Sequence record: MN496308.1
DNA: 11,519 nucleotides
Strand: one strand, 5' to 3'
Below are positions 588 to 9,779 of this stretch, in pieces. The notes under the pieces are model-generated. The model saw only the letters and a program-made list of their open reading frames with translations, was not told where the DNA came from and ran no database searches. The position numbers and the translations under genes were made by a program. Each line of letters starts with the position of its first letter. Positions within the stretch are counted from its first letter, which is position 1.

Positions 588-1353
588 TGGAAGTTTGGAA
601 AAGGCAATGGAAGAAGCACTCAAGAACGCTAAAACGCTGGAAGAATTAGAACAGCTCTACAGACAGATACCACAACCCTCAAAGAAACTCTACAAAGCCT
701 ATGAGAAACGAAAATTTGAGTTAAAGTATGAGCAATATAAGAAGCTAAAAGAGGAACTAGCACAGAAGCGGAAGAAGCTAAAGAAAGAGAAAGTTGATAT
801 TCGTGTTAAGATAACAAAGAAATGGATAAACAGCAGACTGTTCACAGCAGAGCATTATGTCGCATTGCTTCAGCAAAGTAAAGATGGTCTACAGTTAATG
901 TTTCTCAGAAAGGTGAAACTTGTTGAGAATCAAGGCTATTTAATGATTGAAAGTAAGAAGCTCAGAAAGGCATGGGTTCTTGTCGGTGAGCCGGTCCTTC
1001 TTGAAAAGAGCAGAATCTTTGGGAAGAAATTTGTTGCAGTGCACTTTGTCTTGCCAGATTTTCCATATACTCTTGACATAGCTGTGGATGAAAAATTAAG
1101 GCAATTAGCAATCAAAGGAGTAAACGGCCCACAGATATTGCATAGTGTCGTCAGGACCAAGTTCTTTGAGGCACTGGCCCGTGTTGGGACAGGGCCAGAT
1201 TATATGATGCTTATTATTGGCGCAGTGATGGGAATAGGACTAGGAATGGCGATTGGCTTCGGCGTATCGCTATTCCACTTAACATCTACTCCACCCGCTC
1301 ATACTAACACAACAACCACAACCATGAATCCATTCCCTACGTCAACAAAATGA
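580..1353 (+). CDS. SSV1 B277-like core protein (257 aa)
   Basis: N-terminal charged coiled coil, C-terminal Gly-rich transmembrane helix and Thr-rich tail with an NTT sequon. Synteny. Confidence 0.85.
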   Translation: MSNGSLEKAMEEALKNAKTLEELEQLYRQIPQPSKKLYKAYEKRKFELKYEQYKKLKEELAQKRKKLKKEKVDIRVKITKKWINSRLFTAEHYVALLQQSKDGLQLMFLRKVKLVENQGYLMIESKKLRKAWVLVGEPVLLEKSRIFGKKFVAVHFVLPDFPYTLDIAVDEKLRQLAIKGVNGPQILHSVVRTKFFEALARVGTGPDYMMLIIGAVMGIGLGMAIGFGVSLFHLTSTPPAHTNTTTTTMNPFPTSTK

Positions 1354-1362
1354 GGTGAGACA

Positions 1363-1830
1363 ATGCCCAACAAAAAAGCATCCGGTAATGCTGTCGAAGA
1401 GCTAAAGAAAGAAAATGAAGAGCTAAGAAAGAAAATTGAGGAATTGGAAGCTTTGTTAAATGGACCAGAAGAGGAAGATGAGGAAATACAAGAAATCGAG
1501 AACCCTTACACAGTCACAAACCGAGCAATCTCAGAGTTAGTTGAGCCCAAAGACACTATGTTATATCTTTCGGGAAGTCAGATTAATCTGATTTTATCCG
1601 CTTACGAATTCGCCCGTTTACCCGTTTATTTTGGGGAAGAGCCTGTGCTAGAGTTGGCTGAGTTTGCGAGTAAACTGAAGTACTACTTAGTGAGTAAGGG
1701 CGGACGCGGTAGAAGGGATATACTCAGAGTGCTGAGAGTAAGCAGTGGCCAGACTAGGGAAAATGTCAATAAATCAATCTTTAGGCAACTACTACAAGGG
1801 GGGAAAGATTCAGATGTCGAAGAAGACTGA
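1363..1830 (+). CDS. SSV1 A154-like core protein (155 aa)
   Basis: GAGGTG SD. Coiled coil, acidic linker, ENPYTVTN and SKGGRGRRDILRVLR motifs. Directly upstream of the B251-like ATPase. Confidence 0.9.
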   Translation: MPNKKASGNAVEELKKENEELRKKIEELEALLNGPEEEDEEIQEIENPYTVTNRAISELVEPKDTMLYLSGSQINLILSAYEFARLPVYFGEEPVLELAEFASKLKYYLVSKGGRGRRDILRVLRVSSGQTRENVNKSIFRQLLQGGKDSDVEED

Positions 1831-2536
1831 AGAACAGAAAGCTGATGATTTACTATGGTTGGCACAAAAAATAGTGTCAGCATATAAGAATGTAGGATTT
1901 GTATCAGCAGTGATTTTCGGCAAACAAGGAAGTGGCAAAACAACATACGCATTTAAAGTAGCGAGAGACGTTTTCTACAAACTATATAATTTACAGACAA
2001 AGGATGAGGCATGGCAATATGTTAGGACCAGCTATTTCTTTGAATTGCCAGAAGCATTGATGAAGATACAGGATGCAATAGACAATGACTACCGCATTCC
2101 ATTGATAATCTTTGATGATGCGGGAATATGGCTTTCAAAATATGTGTGGTATGAGGACTACATGAAGGCGTTTTATAAAATATATGCACTCATACGAACT
2201 AGGGTGTCGGCTGTTATCTTCACTACACCCAGCCCAGAAGATATAGCATTCTTCTTAAGGGAAAAAGGATGGTACCAAATCAAGATTAGTATGATAAATA
2301 GAAAGGATATGATTGCGAGAGCAACTTTATACGCTAAAGATTTCGCAAGGAATACAAAGGGCGAAATTGTCACTCAGGTGAAGACAAAGGCGTTAGATAT
2401 GTTTAAGGTTGATATTCCAAATAATATATATGAGGAATATATGCAAAAGAGAAGAGAAACAGAAAGAAAATTACTCGCAGAGCTGAAACAAATACTATCA
2501 AGTTTTACGGAAAAGAACGCCGTTATTGAGGCTTGA
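1814..2536 (+). CDS. SSV1 B251-like P-loop ATPase (240 aa from ATG 1814)
   Basis: Walker [10 protein letters not shown] and Walker B IIFDD. The ORF-track start at 1745 lies deep inside the A154-like gene, so ATG 1814 is preferred. Confidence 0.92.
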
Positions 2537-3563
2537 AAACGGGGGTAGGCTCATTTATAATATTTTTCAACCACTCCGCGTATTTCTTGTAGTGTTCTTT
2601 TGCAACACCAAATAATGAAACATAATGTTGTGTAGCAACTCTTATCGGTTTTCTACCTTGAATAAAATCTATGACGTCTAGCGGAATACCTAATTGGGCC
2701 ATTTGAGTTGCGACAAATTTTCTTATGTATTTTATGCGCACAGCGTCTTTGTACGTTTTCTCAAATTTTGCAATTACACCGCGCGTTATATTTGTTTGTC
2801 GTAGTGGCGTTATGTGGAATAGATAAAAGGACCCTTTATAGCCTCTGGTCCAACTGATTGGATAATAACGAATCTCACCATCAGCGATATCACGCTCTGG
2901 CTCTCTTAATACTTTTAGTATTTCAATTAATCTAGCCCCTGACTCCAAAGCTAAGCGATAAACGAGATAAACGTTATCGCTATACTCTTTCGCAAGCAAC
3001 AATGTTTGCTTTATTTGTTCAATTGTAGGAACGTATAGGTCAGCCTTAGTTGATTTTACTTTAATGATCTTCAACACTTTATCAGCAAACTCCTCACTAA
3101 TTAAGCCACGTAATGCTAAGTATTTTGCAAATAGTCTGTACGCTTTCTGTGAATTTCTACTATCTGTATATTTGCGCCTTAACGCATTGATGTATTCTTT
3201 TACTGTTTCTTCAGATATTCTTCTTTTATTGATCAAATATTCAAAGAACCCGTTAATGTTGCCGTCTGTCGCATATTGGCGTAAATTGGCAACCACGCCA
3301 ATTTTACGCCGTTCTTCTTTTTCAGACGGGCCTCCCAAGCCGGTGATCCCGGGTTCAAATCCCGGCGGCCGCATAGTGGGGGATTCCCCCACACCCCCAT
3401 TTTCTTTCAATTTAATGTATGTTTCTACGACATCAGTTAAGGGACCTACATAAGTTTCCTTTAACTTACCGTTTATCGTTCTCAGTATATAAACATAATA
3501 CTTCCCTTTTCTTTCCCTTATGATTACATCACCATATTTATAACGCGTCTTATCTTTTGTCAT
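2523..3563 (-). CDS. int: SSV-type tyrosine integrase (D335 family, 346 aa), intact
   Basis: [15 protein letters not shown] and HYV catalytic motifs. The tRNA-derived MRPPGFEPG segment marks the internal attP. Confidence 0.97.
3329..3373 (+). other. attP: 3' half of tRNA-Gly(CCC), 45 bp, not a complete tRNA gene
   Basis: GGC-CTCCCAA-GCCGG anticodon arm (CCC at 3334-3336), T arm CCGGG-TTCAAAT-CCCGG, acceptor strand CGGCCGC plus discriminator A. No 5' half upstream. Confidence 0.92.
3376..3392. repeat. GC-rich inverted repeat adjacent to attP
   Basis: GTGGGGG-ATT-CCCCCAC, a perfect 7-bp stem. Confidence 0.85.
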
Positions 3564-3583
3564 ATTCCCCTAATGTATTATGA

Positions 3584-3613
3584 TTGCCAAAAGAGGTTTA
3601 TAAGCTCTGGCAA
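3584..3613. promoter_or_regulatory. TATA box (TTTATAA) inside an imperfect palindrome TTGCCA...TGGCAA; could fire in either direction
   Basis: TTGCCA-AAA-GAG-GTTTATAAG-CTC-TGGCAA. Lies about 35 nt from the int ATG and about 30 nt before 3630. Confidence 0.55.
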
Positions 3614-3629
3614 CTCGTAAATTTTTGCC

Positions 3630-3652
3630 GTTAAAAAACGTAGAATTGAAAG
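3630..3652 (+). other. Solitary CRISPR-repeat-like sequence (not an array)
   Basis: GTTAAAAAACGTAGAATTGAAAG. The last 12 nt match the 3' end of the Sulfolobus/Saccharolobus repeat (G[AC]TAATCT..TATAGAATTGAAAG), including the ATTGAAAG handle. The 5' half is divergent. Confidence 0.35.
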
Positions 3653-3733
3653 TAGACGGCAAAGATTCCTAGGCAGTAATACTAAAAATATCGTATTATT
3701 ATTATATAGTTATTTGAGCAAATTACCTATTAC

Positions 3734-3799
3734 GCTAATAGCAGCATTGCTGCTACTAATAGCAGCGATTTAGCAAAACATTGCTGCTAATAGCAGCAT
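3734..3799. repeat. Cluster of alternating direct and inverted TAGCAGC(A) repeats
   Basis: CTAATAGCAGC at 3735, 3756 and 3787. Palindromes TAGCAGCA-T-TGCTGCTA (3739-3755) and TGCTGCTA-A-TAGCAGCA (3782-3798). Confidence 0.9.
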
Positions 3800-3806
3800 C
3801 GTCGTA

Positions 3807-4361
3807 TTACTTTACGTAGACTGAAAGCCATCTCTTAAACTGAGATGGCTTCATCCAGTCTTTCCATCTTGTCAGCACATATGTTCTCTCGTCCTTTGCA
3901 AACTCTTCTGAGACGACTGCTTTTCCATGCTTTTCCAATGTTCTCAACAGTGTGAGAGGCATGAATCTAACTTCCCCTTCTGAATCAGCAATATTCATGA
4001 ACACAGCTTTGTATCCCTTAGATTCTAAGATTTCCGCAACACTAACTCTTACGCCTAACACAGCAATTACTGAGCCTTGCATATTCATCTTATGAGCTCT
4101 GCTTTTACTCTGTCCCTTCGTCAAAGAAGTACCAGTAACATCAAGATATAATTTGAAGCGGGGAATGTAAAAATCAAACTTCTTGAAAGGATCCCCTTCC
4201 CATGTTTCGTCTACTCTGTCAGTTGACAATACACCAATTCCATTCACTGTAATGTCCTTTTCCTTAAGATTTAGGACCAAACGTAGCCATTTTTTCGCAA
4301 TCTCTTCCCTAATTGAAGATATAGCCCAATACTTTTCGTATTTATCCTTCAGTTCGCTCAT
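3807..4361 (-). CDS. Putative PD-(D/E)XK-fold nuclease (SSV1 D244 / SSV-RH D212-like, 184 aa)
   Basis: Helix-1 REE, then FDF..LYLDVTG pattern. Position next to int. Family assignment from memory only. Confidence 0.6.
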   Translation of the reverse strand: MSELKDKYEKYWAISSIREEIAKKWLRLVLNLKEKDITVNGIGVLSTDRVDETWEGDPFKKFDFYIPRFKLYLDVTGTSLTKGQSKSRAHKMNMQGSVIAVLGVRVSVAEILESKGYKAVFMNIADSEGEVRFMPLTLLRTLEKHGKAVVSEEFAKDERTYVLTRWKDWMKPSQFKRWLSVYVK

Positions 4362-4534
4362 TCTTCTTCCCTCAGATGGTAGAGGTCCGCGAAAATCTGT
4401 TGACTTAGGAGTAGGGCCTTATCTATTTTCTCTTGGCAGTTTTTCTCTAACATTAGGTCAATTTTTATCTCGCGAACTAGAGATAATAGTTCTCTTGCTT
4501 CTTTGTCTAAATTAAGCAGATAGCCCTCATCCAT
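4358..4534 (-). CDS. SSV1 D63-like ROP-like helical hairpin protein (58 aa)
   Basis: LDKEARELLSLVREIKID resembles D63 LDEDVRELLSLIHEIKID as recalled. The GGTGA SD favours ATG 4534 over TTG 4540. Confidence 0.85.
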   Translation of the reverse strand: MDEGYLLNLDKEARELLSLVREIKIDLMLEKNCQEKIDKALLLSQQIFADLYHLREEE

Positions 4535-4536
4535 CT

Positions 4537-5160
4537 TCAATTCACCAGTTCTTTTAATGCGGTAATTCGAGTCTCAAGGTCCTTCATTCTTGCTGGAGGT
4601 ATCAAATAACAGTTGAGGTCCTTTCTGAAATTATTCTTCTGAATTTGCATTAGTAAAGCCTCTAACTCATTAATCACATCCAATAATTTTGTTATATCGA
4701 TTTTTGCTTCAGCTTTTGCTTCGGCTCTGGATTCGCTTATATTAATATTTACAATGGGCTGAATTGATTCTTTTGCTAGCTCTAGCCCTAGCTCCCTTGA
4801 TACTCTGTTCAAGTCTTCTTTGTGGCCAGAAAGAGCGTAAATAAGGGTCTCAAGGCCTAGTTTCACAATCCTTTTCTTTCTAGGCGAAAGTGACATATAA
4901 CGCGCCTTTGCCACTGCACTAATTCTGAAAGCAATGAGCGATGTAACGCCCGTGAAATCCTCGTCGCTTTTTCCAATATTTTCTATATCTTTTTGTATAA
5001 GAGTGTTTGTGTTAGTGTTTGTAGGGTTGTTTGTTTGTGTTTGTTTGTTTGACGTTTGTCTAACAGTTTTTTCTGAACCCGCTTTTGTGTTTGTGTTTGT
5101 TAGTGTGTTTGTATTTTTGTAGTTTTGTGTGAAGAAATTGAAAGAATCACTGTCAGCCAT
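4537..5160 (-). CDS. Hypothetical protein (207 aa): Asn/Thr-rich N-terminus, central RHH-like segment, C-terminal coiled coil
   Basis: Long ORF overlapping its neighbours in the leftward operon. The IAFRIS...KKRIVK segment aligns with the B129-like N-terminus. Confidence 0.8.
   Translation of the reverse strand: MADSDSFNFFTQNYKNTNTLTNTNTKAGSEKTVRQTSNKQTQTNNPTNTNTNTLIQKDIENIGKSDEDFTGVTSLIAFRISAVAKARYMSLSPRKKRIVKLGLETLIYALSGHKEDLNRVSRELGLELAKESIQPIVNINISESRAEAKAEAKIDITKLLDVINELEALLMQIQKNNFRKDLNCYLIPPARMKDLETRITALKELVN
5002..5130. repeat. Strand-biased GT-rich short repeats (TTTGT / GTGTTTGT) within the 207-aa gene
   Basis: More than ten TTTGT units. The + strand is nearly G/T-only apart from a short central spacer. 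Confidence 0.85.
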
Positions 5161-6295: not shown

Positions 6296-6466
6296 ATGAA
6301 AGTAGTGACGTTTAAGCTAGAAGATGACTTGTTAAGGATTTTAGACTTATACGCTATCAAGACGAAAACGACAAGAAGCGACGTAATTCGCCAAGCATTG
6401 ATGTTGTTATTGAAGGATGAAATAAACAAAGCGAGAGCAAAAGTTGAAACAATCCCGCTGAGGTGA
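6296..6466 (+). CDS. CopG-like RHH protein (56 aa; C80-like), absent from the ORF track
   Basis: Manual translation MKVVTFKLEDDLLRILDLYAIKTKTTRSDVIRQALMLLLKDEINKARAKVETIPLR gives a classic RHH pattern. Confidence 0.9.
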   Translation: MKVVTFKLEDDLLRILDLYAIKTKTTRSDVIRQALMLLLKDEINKARAKVETIPLR

Positions 6467-7385: not shown

Positions 7386-9779
7386 ATGAAGTGGCTACTA
7401 TTTTTACTGCTATTACTAGGAGTTATAACAATAGTAGGACCAACTGTTAATGCTATAGTGGCCCCACCCCCCGGCAGTGGCGGGGCTTATGCTACAACAT
7501 ACAACTTCACATTACCAGTTACCACATATACAAAAACATGTCAAGTAGTGCAGAATGGTTCTACTTTCGCTTCAGCTTCATGGCGTAACCCATCGTATGT
7601 TAGTGTGTATAATACATACTATCTGCAAATATTGCCGAATCAAGAATACATAAACAATAACGTATCACTAGCTCTTTCGGCATCAGTAATCGCATTAAAT
7701 GCTACTTTTCAATTAGCTAGCAGTAGTAACAGCGGAAGTTATGGTGGTGTGGCAATAGGATACGGAACGCTTATAAACCCCAACATGGGTAACTATGGGC
7801 CTCAACCCCCATATTATGCTACTGGAATTGTTGTGTGGTTAGAACACGGTGCAATGAGTACATATCATCTATTTGTATTTTACAATGGGCAGATGGTGCT
7901 GAATGCCAGTGTTGGGAGTGTTGCTATTGGTCAGAAATTAGGAATAGGTTTTTGGTACACGTTTGGTCAACCAATAAAGATATACTACTATAATGGTTCT
8001 GTGTACACGTATAGCTTATCTATATATAATTCTATGGCGACAATAAACAGCTATTATATCATATCAGCTTCTAACGCTGGCCCGGTTTATGGTTATGGGC
8101 AATGGGTCCTTTTAAACATACAGTATTTCCAGACGCAAACGATTACTTACACAGCTACATTTTCTTATTACGCAGTTCAGTTGTCCAATGGCGTTAATGC
8201 ATTAGTAGCATACACTGACGCTTACAACCCAGTAAACATAACTTCTAATGCGTCATATGGTGTTATCGCAATAGTGAAAGAAGTAAACTATAGTGTCAGT
8301 AATGCACAATACCCCGTTTCTTCACCATTCTCATTTCTTCCTAGCTCTAACGGCATATATATCATAGCTTATTCTTATCCCTTCCCCTCAATAAACTCAT
8401 ACTATATCAACATCACATTTAACTTCCAATTCGTGACACCGCAACAAACAGTTTTCAAGAACGTCACAATTCCAGTGATTGTCTTTGCATTTGCATTCGC
8501 ATTTTCCTATGTTAAGTTGCCAAACTCTACCTATCTTCCCGGCCAAACTGTGACTTTGACATATTCTGCTAGTCCAAATTATCCGCCAAACATGGGGTAC
8601 ATACCGATTTCACCGCCGACAGTCTCAATTAATGCACCCGGTGTTGTACAAGCAAATTACCCTGTTACATTCAAAATACCTAATGTAACAACACCACAAG
8701 CATTTAGTTACACAATAACGGTGAGTGAAGGTTCTTTCGTTATAGCTACATATAATGGTACGCTGTATGTTATAGTGCCTAACAAACTTCCCGTTATTTT
8801 CGTTCAACCTTATCCCACTACAGTGACCCAAGGACAAACTCTCAAACTAACATTCCAATTTAGTTATGCCACACCTCTAGAGAACATAAGTACAAGTGTA
8901 TTTCAAAAAGGGGCAAATTACTTGTATTTGCCCGCACAAATAGTATCTGCAAATGCGGTCATACAGTTCTACGCATCTTGGAGCAGTTCCAATGATGGCC
9001 TAATCATATTCACAAATACTGTGAATTACATTATCCCATTCAATGGCACAAACGCACTCACTTTCACAAATAACAGTATAAACACGCTAACAATTTCTGT
9101 GTCCAATGGGACAATCCTTATTTCAAATGGAGTCAACAAACTGCTGCTACAGAACACCTCACCAATTATCGGAATAGGCTTTTACAACCCATACCCAATT
9201 AACATTAAATGGGTATATTTGTTTGGGATTGTCACCCCTACTGCGACTGCGGGTCAATCATATGTGATTCTCATAGGGCAAAACCCATCAACATTGCAAC
9301 AATACACAACTGGTTACGTTAATCAGTCAGGGTGGGCTACCGTAAGCATACCGATTACACAGACACCATATGAGCTGATTGATATTGATTGGTATGGCGT
9401 GAAATACATCATATTGAATATATCAGTAACTCAACCTACAACTACAACAACACCTACTGTGAATACTTCAACTCTCACTTACAACTACACCCCACCATTC
9501 AGCAATAGCATCCAACCAAATAGCACATTGTATAATTTTGCAAATGCCCAGCCATGGGCGACTGTGATTGGGATAATAGTGGTTGTTGTCATAGCATTAT
9601 TGGGATGGAAATTTGGAAGTCTAAGCGGTGCAATAGGCGGTGCGACAGCGGGCCTAATAATGACAGCTTATCTTGGTTTACTGCCATGGTATCTATTCTA
9701 CATCTTTGTTCTCGGAATTGCAATGCTTCTCGCAAAATTGATAGCAGATAAATTCATGAGTGGTGATTCAGATGACTGA
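7386..9779 (+). CDS. vp4: VP4 tail/adsorption glycoprotein (SSV1 C792-like, 797 aa)
   Basis: Signal peptide, NPSYVSVYNTYYLQ.LPNQEYI motif, about 24 N-x-S/T sequons counted by hand, C-terminal transmembrane helices. Confidence 0.95.
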   Translation: MKWLLFLLLLLGVITIVGPTVNAIVAPPPGSGGAYATTYNFTLPVTTYTKTCQVVQNGSTFASASWRNPSYVSVYNTYYLQILPNQEYINNNVSLALSASVIALNATFQLASSSNSGSYGGVAIGYGTLINPNMGNYGPQPPYYATGIVVWLEHGAMSTYHLFVFYNGQMVLNASVGSVAIGQKLGIGFWYTFGQPIKIYYYNGSVYTYSLSIYNSMATINSYYIISASNAGPVYGYGQWVLLNIQYFQTQTITYTATFSYYAVQLSNGVNALVAYTDAYNPVNITSNASYGVIAIVKEVNYSVSNAQYPVSSPFSFLPSSNGIYIIAYSYPFPSINSYYINITFNFQFVTPQQTVFKNVTIPVIVFAFAFAFSYVKLPNSTYLPGQTVTLTYSASPNYPPNMGYIPISPPTVSINAPGVVQANYPVTFKIPNVTTPQAFSYTITVSEGSFVIATYNGTLYVIVPNKLPVIFVQPYPTTVTQGQTLKLTFQFSYATPLENISTSVFQKGANYLYLPAQIVSANAVIQFYASWSSSNDGLIIFTNTVNYIIPFNGTNALTFTNNSINTLTISVSNGTILISNGVNKLLLQNTSPIIGIGFYNPYPINIKWVYLFGIVTPTATAGQSYVILIGQNPSTLQQYTTGYVNQSGWATVSIPITQTPYELIDIDWYGVKYIILNISVTQPTTTTTPTVNTSTLTYNYTPPFSNSIQPNSTLYNFANAQPWATVIGIIVVVVIALLGWKFGSLSGAIGGATAGLIMTAYLGLLPWYLFYIFVLGIAMLLAKLIADKFMSGDSDD

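Follow-up and report, generated by a model that had tools for sequence, protein, structure and literature searches.

Alternating palindromes of an avoided pentanucleotide upstream of the integrase gene of fusellovirus SSV22, a candidate origin or maintenance site

No replication origin or initiator of a fusellovirus (Sulfolobus spindle-shaped virus, SSV) has been characterised in the literature. For SSV10, the 'Tori' region with the stem-loop of open reading frame (ORF) A49 was proposed as the replication origin; of two Tn5 insertions, the one at position 4468, bordering the central repeat, was non-viable and the one at 4545, 77 bp off, was viable, in small numbers of transformations (0/3 versus 2/3; Goodman & Stedman 2018, PMC6080066). 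The origin of pRN1 was mapped to a stem-loop 3' of the replication gene (Joshua et al. 2013, PMC3869888). The stretch of DNA analysed here, referred to as the window, is the complete circular genome of SSV22, a fusellovirus of Sulfolobus sp. E5-1 from the Philippines (11,519 bp, accession number MN496308.1). It contains a compact array of alternating repeats between the end of a T5-like operon and the control block of the integrase gene, int. Judged by comparison with related genomes, this array is most likely the SSV22 version of a conserved fuselloviral cis-element made of W-centred pentanucleotide palindromes (W being A or T). The recurrent class of arrays to which it belongs is undescribed in these terms in the searchable literature.

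The array and its internal repeats were located as follows.

Positions 3739-3798, no strand assigned: array of five 8-bp half-sites (TAGCAGCA/TGCTGCTA) in alternating orientation, with one GCWGC per half-site.
Positions 3739-3755, no strand assigned: perfect 17-bp palindrome TAGCAGCA-T-TGCTGCTA.
Positions 3782-3798, no strand assigned: perfect 17-bp palindrome TGCTGCTA-A-TAGCAGCA, followed on the minus strand by ATGTTTTGCT, which is terminator-like by the bacterial consensus.
Positions 3771-3778, plus strand: degenerate sixth copy TAGCAAAA.
Positions 3734-3747, plus strand: left copy of a 14-nt direct repeat GCTAATAGCAGCAT bounding the array.
Positions 3786-3799, plus strand: right copy of the 14-nt direct repeat GCTAATAGCAGCAT bounding the array.

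A first-pass annotation of the sequence had described five copies of TAGCAGC in the order +,-,+,-,+ and this was confirmed. The copies are found at 3739 (+), 3749 (-), 3760 (+), 3783 (-) and 3791 (+) in strictly alternating orientation, the minus copies starting at 3748 and 3782, as annotated, when read as 8-mers. The partial copy at 3771, the TTATATA motif at 3702-3708 and the bracketing repeat TCGTATTA at 3691 and 3802 were all present as well. The sole further TAGCAGC copy in the 11.5 kb genome lies at 9143, leaving five of the six within 59 bp. Six copies, a number reached in none of 200 dinucleotide-preserving shuffles, compare with 1.3 expected. The GCWGC words of the array, at 3741, 3749, 3762, 3783 and 3793, represent five of the six genomic copies, in 57 bp. 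A third inverted pair, with a 4-nt spacer, spans 3748-3767, and half-sites of the same orientation are spaced 21 and 31 bp apart. The bounding repeat GCTAATAGCAGCAT reaches 16 nt in SSV19, SSV20 and SSV21. In a count of 7-mers present in three or more copies, the array was the top repeat cluster of the genome, with a score of 21 versus 6 for the next region. A run of a tandem-repeat finder reported nothing.

The first-pass annotation had not remarked on the most informative property of the repeated word: GCWGC is a pentanucleotide of the restriction/methylation type that has been purged from the rest of the genome. Thirteen fusellovirus genomes, out of about 50 in existence, were compared, with expected word counts derived from simple models (dinucleotide-preserving shuffles for SSV22, SSV1 and SSV10). 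GCWGC was observed six times versus 15.7 expected in SSV22, twice versus 15.0 in SSV1 and once versus 9.8 in SSV10. Outside the locus upstream of int, the 13 genomes hold 0-3 copies versus 10-16 expected. Sampled DNA of the host order showed no such depletion: a 100-kb stretch of Acidianus manzaensis had 82 copies, the expectation being 36 under a zero-order and 101 under a Markov model, and a second genome sample had 67 versus 61-66 expected. The word is the recognition site of ApeKI/TseI and is given in REBASE-derived listings, as known or predicted, for many 5-methylcytosine (m5C) methyltransferases of Thermoproteota. Genes of the C5-methyltransferase family (PF00145) were present in 305 of 325 host-order genomes, a figure that reflects family membership only and not site specificity. 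The purging could be caused by restriction or by the decay of methylated cytosines at 80°C.

At one homologous position, the purged word is clustered in many viruses. Between 120 and 260 bp upstream of the int start, five GCWGC copies are located in SSV22, seven in SSV20, eight in SSV3, seven in SSV4, five in SSV6 and four in SSV7, and these clusters of 4-8 copies in six viruses each fit within about 100 bp. In SSV4, every genomic copy (7/7) belongs to the array. The nuclease gene of SSV3 and SSV4 is followed by a gap of about 220 bp with arrays of GCTGCATACAGCAGC and GCTGCATGCAGC palindromes and then by int; GCTGCATGCAGC is present at the same locus in SSV7. The core common to the palindromes of SSV22, SSV3, SSV4 and SSV7 is GCWGC, and SSV3, SSV4 and SSV22 have in common the junction 'nuclease stop - AAGTAATAC - 4 or 5 nt - TGCTGC..AGCAGCA'. 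The integrases of the array-bearing viruses are only about 39% identical; the position of the array is homologous.

A second word occupies the same locus in other members of the family. GCWGC is wholly missing from SSV2 and SSV5, which carry GGWCC arrays of 33 and 20 copies there, with a dominant spacing of 11 bp, while in SSV6 a GGWCC array (seven copies) and a GCWGC array lie side by side. Clusters of a methylation word, of the type found in oriC and pac, are thus present in SSV22 and five other SSVs for GCWGC and in three for GGWCC. SSV8 and SSV9 lack GGWCC entirely and SSV1 and SSV14 have few copies of it, but SSV22, with 20, shows no avoidance. A word array is missing upstream of int in SSV1, SSV8, SSV9, SSV10, SSV14 and some Kamchatka SSVs. 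At the locus, inverted repeats of another kind form a cluster in SSV10, and SSV14 has palindromes. Since the word was eliminated elsewhere yet kept in multiple copies at one homologous position, selection must have acted at that position, and on these sequence comparisons the array is a real, selected element at the level of DNA.

Close copies of the SSV22 array were found in SSV19, SSV20 and SSV21 and in an SSV19-like copy in the chromosome of Sulfolobus sp. E11-6. In SSV20 the array has gained 27 bp, equal to one complete perfect palindromic unit, and the alternation is kept (><><> to ><><><>), so that the copy number changed and the design was preserved. The genomes are mosaic. SSV19 and SSV22 have in common, at about 100% identity, a module of 3.3 kb (about 1050-4340 of the window) containing the 3' end of B277, A153, the DnaA-like B251, int, the array and the nuclease gene; its flanks are 30-80% identical. 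SSV20 differs from SSV22 by 10-50% across 1100-4160, except for an identity island of 386 bp (3451-3836) with the int start and the array at its centre. Purifying selection cannot be read from the identity among SSV19-22, as this is a mosaic block in which even the opening 37 codons of int show no synonymous change.

The SSV19-like genome in the E11-6 chromosome (CP045706.1, 2527237-2547377) has an intact int. A separate C-terminal int fragment of 257 amino acids, apparently in the same chromosome, suggests a tandem or complex integration, and a truncated copy of a ribbon-helix-helix (RHH) gene of 46 amino acids may mark a junction in the T6 region.

The surroundings of the array consist of the following features.

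Positions 3807-4361, minus strand: gene of a D244/D212-family PD-(D/E)XK nuclease (PF12187), the final gene of the T5-like operon.
Positions 2523-3563, minus strand: SSV-type integrase gene (int).
Positions 3564-3698, minus strand: integrase control block, conserved across fuselloviruses and homologous to SSV1 'ORF E-54'.
Positions 3676-3733, no strand assigned: A+T-rich tract (81% A+T), essentially the most AT-rich 58 bp genome-wide, adjoining the array.
Positions 3702-3708, readable on either strand: TATA-like TTATATA inside the A+T-rich tract.
Positions 3691-3698, plus strand: left copy of the 8-bp direct repeat TCGTATTA, containing GTATTA, the seed of the aCcr1 box.
Positions 3802-3809, plus strand: right copy of TCGTATTA, overlapping the nuclease stop codon.

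Both genes are encoded on the minus strand and the array sits in the 243-bp intergenic gap between the nuclease stop (3807) and the int start (3563). It begins 9 nt from the nuclease stop codon, 30 bp from TTATATA and 170-240 bp from the int ATG. A perfect hairpin with a 10-bp stem (AAGCCATCTC/GAGATGGCTT) was observed at 3825-3851 within the last nuclease codons; it is kept in SSV19, SSV21 and SSV22 and broken by substitutions in SSV20.

The control block aligns at about 75% identity with DNA upstream of int in SSV1, Kamchatka SSVs, ASV1 and metagenomic pSSVi-like integrative plasmids, and is conserved in alpha- and betafuselloviruses as well as in the pSSVi-like plasmids. It contains a TATA box flanked by inverted repeats and a conserved hairpin (TTTTTGCCGT/ACGGCAAA), to which some viruses add the pair GTAATACTA/TAGTATTAC. 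In SSV1 the block (stretch 1969-2147) corresponds to 'ORF E-54', the reading frame of which shifts between viruses, so it is the DNA that is conserved. The homologue in SSV22, at 3578-3709, was rejected as a coding sequence: the SSV1 frame is open, but it has no start codon and the frame shifts. Based on these frame shifts and the lack of a start codon in SSV22, E-54 is probably not a gene; it would instead be the promoter or control region of the integrase gene. According to the literature, int is thought to be transcribed separately (Tint) in all SSVs except SSV1.

GTATTA, the aCcr1-box seed (ccr-2 box TGTATTAT), has five of its eight genomic copies within 314 bp around the int start, in sites at 3496-3501, 3574-3581, 3677-3682, 3693-3698 and 3804-3809. 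The motif (A/T)GTATTATG is located between the int TATA box and the ATG; GTATTATG is invariant in six aligned fuselloviruses, but not in SSV3, SSV4 and SSV7. An aCcr1-like RHH protein is encoded by SSV19-22 (6296-6466). Expression of the integrase may be tied to a cell-cycle regulator.

A strong depletion of other short palindromes was also observed in SSV22 and 12 further SSV genomes. Most SSVs have 0-4 copies of GCGC versus about 20 expected, SSV20 and SSV22 having 8-9; of CCWGG there is a single copy in SSV22 and none in SSV1 and SSV9. SSV22 has 10 copies of GATC and 11 of TCGA, each versus 40 expected. The differences between lineages suggest different restriction histories. SSV7 (about 3740-3830) and SSV14 (339-405) have a common palindrome element CTATATGTAC/GTACATATAG adjoining the int block. 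The SSV7 record points out a similarity between the C-termini of A49 (9468-9617) and B76, and a second CTATATGTAC/GTACATATAG copy may be present at the far end of the plus-strand gene block (about 9570-9617). If real, this copy could complete the pair of repeats by which published work explains an inversion of the T5 region.

The presence of 4-33 copies of an otherwise purged word at one locus suggests that a sequence-specific protein reads the word as double-stranded DNA. The array would then be a multi-site docking platform for such a protein, with dimers bound to the 17-bp palindromes and the sites of the same orientation, 21 and 31 bp apart, facing one side of the helix. The palindromes, these spacings and the 11-bp periodicity of GGWCC fit with cooperative docking on one helix face. 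Placed beside the most easily melted tract of the genome, the platform would have the architecture of an origin or of a partition-like maintenance site. This origin or maintenance platform, the general claim of docking included, is the first choice among the explanations, although it is given somewhat less than an even chance. Host cytosine methylation of the words might gate the activity of the platform. It is conceivable, if unlikely, that the words are the only substrates of the virus for a host C5-methyltransferase and constitute an epigenetic gate that acts on the initiation of replication, on episome maintenance or on integration, in the manner of a clock based on hemimethylation or of a host-identity sensor, and that they mark the SSV origin. 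The anatomy of the array, the purging of the word, its clustering at one position in many viruses and the change in copy number that preserves the design are shown by the sequences; protein binding, a role in replication or maintenance and an involvement of methylation are what we infer.

An iteron or cruciform origin beside an unwinding element had already been suggested in the first-pass annotation, which is partly supported as a whole; this part of it agrees with all the results and is strengthened by the comparison with relatives. The array is the sole iteron-like cluster in the genome, adjoining the most meltable tract. Both features of the iteron type are present: multiple copies of a short word in non-coding DNA (five half-sites in SSV22, seven in SSV20) and an adjacent A+T-rich unwinding element (3676-3733). 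The arrays of the relatives, the proposal made for SSV10, the iteron palindrome of a pSSVi-like plasmid, the mapped pRN1 origin and the inclusion of the array in the 3.3-kb module with B251 point in the same direction.

A number of observations weigh against the platform. SSV1, SSV8, SSV9, SSV14 and some Kamchatka SSVs replicate without a word array at the locus, so the array is not a universal fuselloviral origin unless origins are modular. No origin recognition boxes of the host (ORB/mini-ORB) were found near the array within three mismatches of the consensus. The DnaA-like B251 is disfavoured as the cognate binder, because the SSV20 allele is only about 50-60% identical in nucleotides to that of SSV22 and stands beside the same array. 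The near-perfect conservation among SSV19-22 may result from recent recombination rather than from selection. Among fuselloviral repeat arrays, function has been tested only for those of SSV1 T5/T6/Tind, which are operators of the F55 repressor; this favours a transcriptional role. The C5-methylase of S. acidocaldarius has been assigned RGATCY. SuiI of Sulfolobus islandicus reportedly cuts GCWGC (Sollner et al. 2006, a paper cited in the literature in connection with GCWGC). GC skew was tried as an origin marker and discarded, as it tracks the direction of transcription only.

The best surviving rival to a docking platform for replication or maintenance is a transcriptional control site, which is regarded as possible but doubtful. 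The half-sites would be operators for a dimeric regulator of the RHH, winged helix-turn-helix (wHTH) or zinc-finger type, viral or host, that insulates or terminates the T5-like operon and controls Tint or a promoter in the TATA-like tract. The array lies exactly between the last stop of the operon and the conserved Tint promoter block, with TTATATA at 30 bp, and the presumed separate transcription of int outside SSV1 agrees with a control site here. The 17-bp palindromes suit dimeric regulators, several of which are encoded by SSV22, and seeds of the aCcr1 box stand on both sides of the array, with an enrichment near int. The highest-ranking repeat clusters of SSV1 are operators of F55 at early promoters. 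For the attenuator between the T5-like operon and int that the first-pass annotation had suggested, the hairpin TGCTGCTATTAGCAGCA followed by ATGTTTTGCT (TGTTTTG) on the minus strand fits a terminator consensus, and the folds offer alternative structures; the consensus is bacterial and of doubtful relevance in Sulfolobus, and archaeal termination is not known to need hairpins. On the other hand, the word occurs at no other SSV22 promoter, no cognate regulator was identified and the array is 170-240 bp away from the int ATG. The 33 copies at 11-bp spacing in SSV2 far exceed what an operator needs, and the virus would bear a cost in restriction or mutation although a regulator could do with another word.

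An element directed at restriction-modification is less probable still. It could act as a methylation-sensing switch, as a sink for a methyltransferase or endonuclease, or as a cleavable site provoking recombinational repair and exchange between co-infecting viruses. GCWGC and GGWCC are both classic type II/m5C words, found side by side in SSV6 and both depleted elsewhere in several SSVs. The near-universal C5-methylase genes of the host order (305/325 genomes) agree with this explanation, as do the identity islands of the mosaic genomes, which are centred on the array locus. However, a genome without other sites needs no decoy and GGWCC, at 20 copies, is not avoided in SSV22. Moreover, the explanation overlaps with the docking platform rather than excluding it.

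Folding was examined on both strands. Folded as RNA, the array gave z-scores versus shuffles of -6.75 for the plus strand and -6.55 for the minus strand. The mutually exclusive hairpins of the first-pass annotation are real in the sense that alternative pairings exist, the minimum-energy structure accounting for only 3-10% of the ensemble. When folded alone as DNA, the 81-nt stretch was less extreme (z -2.4). Among 90-nt windows of single-stranded DNA, the array region had the most stable fold of the genome (z -4.9), approached only by the tRNA-derived attP within int. One stem position is G-U on the plus strand and A-C on the minus strand. A scan with the Rfam covariance models gave no match at the array and only a chance hit elsewhere (E = 0.84).

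These structures could belong to an RNA-level element, either a stabiliser or attenuator in the 3' untranslated region of the T5-like mRNA or a plus-strand antisense RNA with kissing hairpins bound by the Rop-like D63. Stable alternative folds on both strands, the asymmetric stem position, the D63 homologue encoded nearby and the plus-strand 'Tori' transcript proposed at the same place in SSV10 are in its favour. It is nevertheless very unlikely. Next to the lack of an Rfam match, D63 homologues are present in SSV1 and SSV10, both without such arrays, and a search for RNA sequencing runs listed none; no support was thus found for the antisense RNA/D63 suggestion of the first-pass annotation. 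In SSV2 and SSV5, most GGWCC copies are repeated directly, 11 bp apart, which is a signature of double-stranded DNA and not of a hairpin, and structure would not demand one particular purged word.

The two TCGTATTA copies flank a segment of 103 bp, as a target-site duplication would. Deletion of 3699-3809, leaving one TCGTATTA, restores sequence that is contiguous in SSV1 and M.03.0.42 (shuffle p about 0.005-0.01), and the sequence past the right copy continues the homology with both. The repeat may have mediated gain of the array, or else its loss in SSV1-type viruses. Least probable of all is a functionless, slippage-prone palindromic insertion, such as a miniature inverted-repeat transposable element (MITE) or a template-switch product with an 8-bp target duplication: the flanking repeat, the restored contiguity and the differing copy number in SSV20 speak for it, but the segment has no terminal inverted repeats, its ends TTATTATATAG... 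and ...AGCAGCATCG being unrelated, related arrays stand at the same locus in SSV3, SSV4, SSV6 and SSV7, neutral persistence is unlikely for a word otherwise purged, and TCGTATTA may equally have served array loss.

Several identities were rejected. Dispersed copies of the array were not found in phage and plasmid records, IMG/VR, JGI metagenomes or the 325 host-order genomes, the hosts E5-1 and E11-6 not having been searched whole; pattern matches in IMG/VR and the metagenomes were Ala/Leu-rich coding segments of unrelated contigs. A MITE or mobile element was dismissed, as there are no copies in the searched databases and no terminal inverted repeats. A private, lineage-specific insertion of 103 bp was overturned by the arrays of SSV3, SSV4, SSV6 and SSV7. 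The array was also judged non-coding: a plus-strand frame (3621-3773) and a TTG-initiated ORF of 19 amino acids cross it, and the frames are not conserved in relatives. The annotated plus-strand ORFs over the arrays of SSV3, SSV4 and SSV7 agree only where the DNA block is conserved.

In some four decades of research on fuselloviruses, a model family among archaeal viruses, no origin, initiator or maintenance site has been identified, and the array is a small and sharply defined candidate. Its importance is shown by evolution and not by resemblance, a costly word being tolerated at one locus only, and likewise in relatives with the same or a second word. It also connects maintenance of the virus genome with the restriction-modification of the host, a subject little explored in archaea. 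Should the array prove to be an operator, it would be a new regulatory site for integrase expression. If the epigenetic gate were true, it would be the archaeal-virus counterpart of the GATC clusters in oriC or P1 pac.

Among known systems, the closest in position is the 'Tori' region of SSV10, where direct and inverted repeats likewise cluster in the interval from the T5-like operon to int. Its repeats, GTAGTAACGTAGTAT and GTAGTAAGG with three copies each at 4371-4563, are of another word, with one GCWGC nearby, long-range arms and no sequence homology to the SSV22 array. The 62-bp tandem repeat of SSV2 (4.5 copies, repeat_region 2901-3181 of NC_005265) has the same locus, between the nuclease stop and the int control block, and is also an array of W-centred palindromes. 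It differs in its word (GGWCC, 33 copies, no GCWGC), in its mostly direct orientation at 11-bp spacing and in overlapping annotated small ORFs. The F55 operators of SSV1 are fuselloviral repeat arrays too and form the top repeat clusters of that genome, in a region once proposed as the SSV1 origin. Unlike the SSV22 array, they are direct GATAGA-like repeats at early promoters and not at int, and F55 occurs in SSV1 only.

In E. coli oriC and phage P1 pac, a methyltransferase word, GATC, is concentrated in clusters and its methylation can gate activity. GATC is not purged there, whereas the word of the SSV arrays is almost absent elsewhere in those genomes, and methylation in the SSVs is hypothetical. 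With the RNA I/RNA II-Rop system of ColE1 the locus has in common that hairpins are possible on both strands and that the gene of a Rop-like four-helix protein (D63 family) is close by; across SSVs, however, the arrays and D63 do not go together.

Outside the viruses, the pRN1 origin is likewise a non-coding Sulfolobus stem-loop region of about 100 bp, immediately 3' of an operon and essential in cis (PMC3869888). It has a cognate primase-polymerase, Orf904, and a GTG loop motif, and it is a single stem-loop and not an array of a purged word. A pSSVi-like element (JGI Ga0208429_100405, 2534-2621) carries a palindrome with arms of 42 nt, each with three 9-bp GCGTAG iterons. It is placed between the gene of a wHTH-containing putative replication protein of 657 amino acids and the same int block that borders the SSV22 array, and from its sequence this palindrome looks like an origin.

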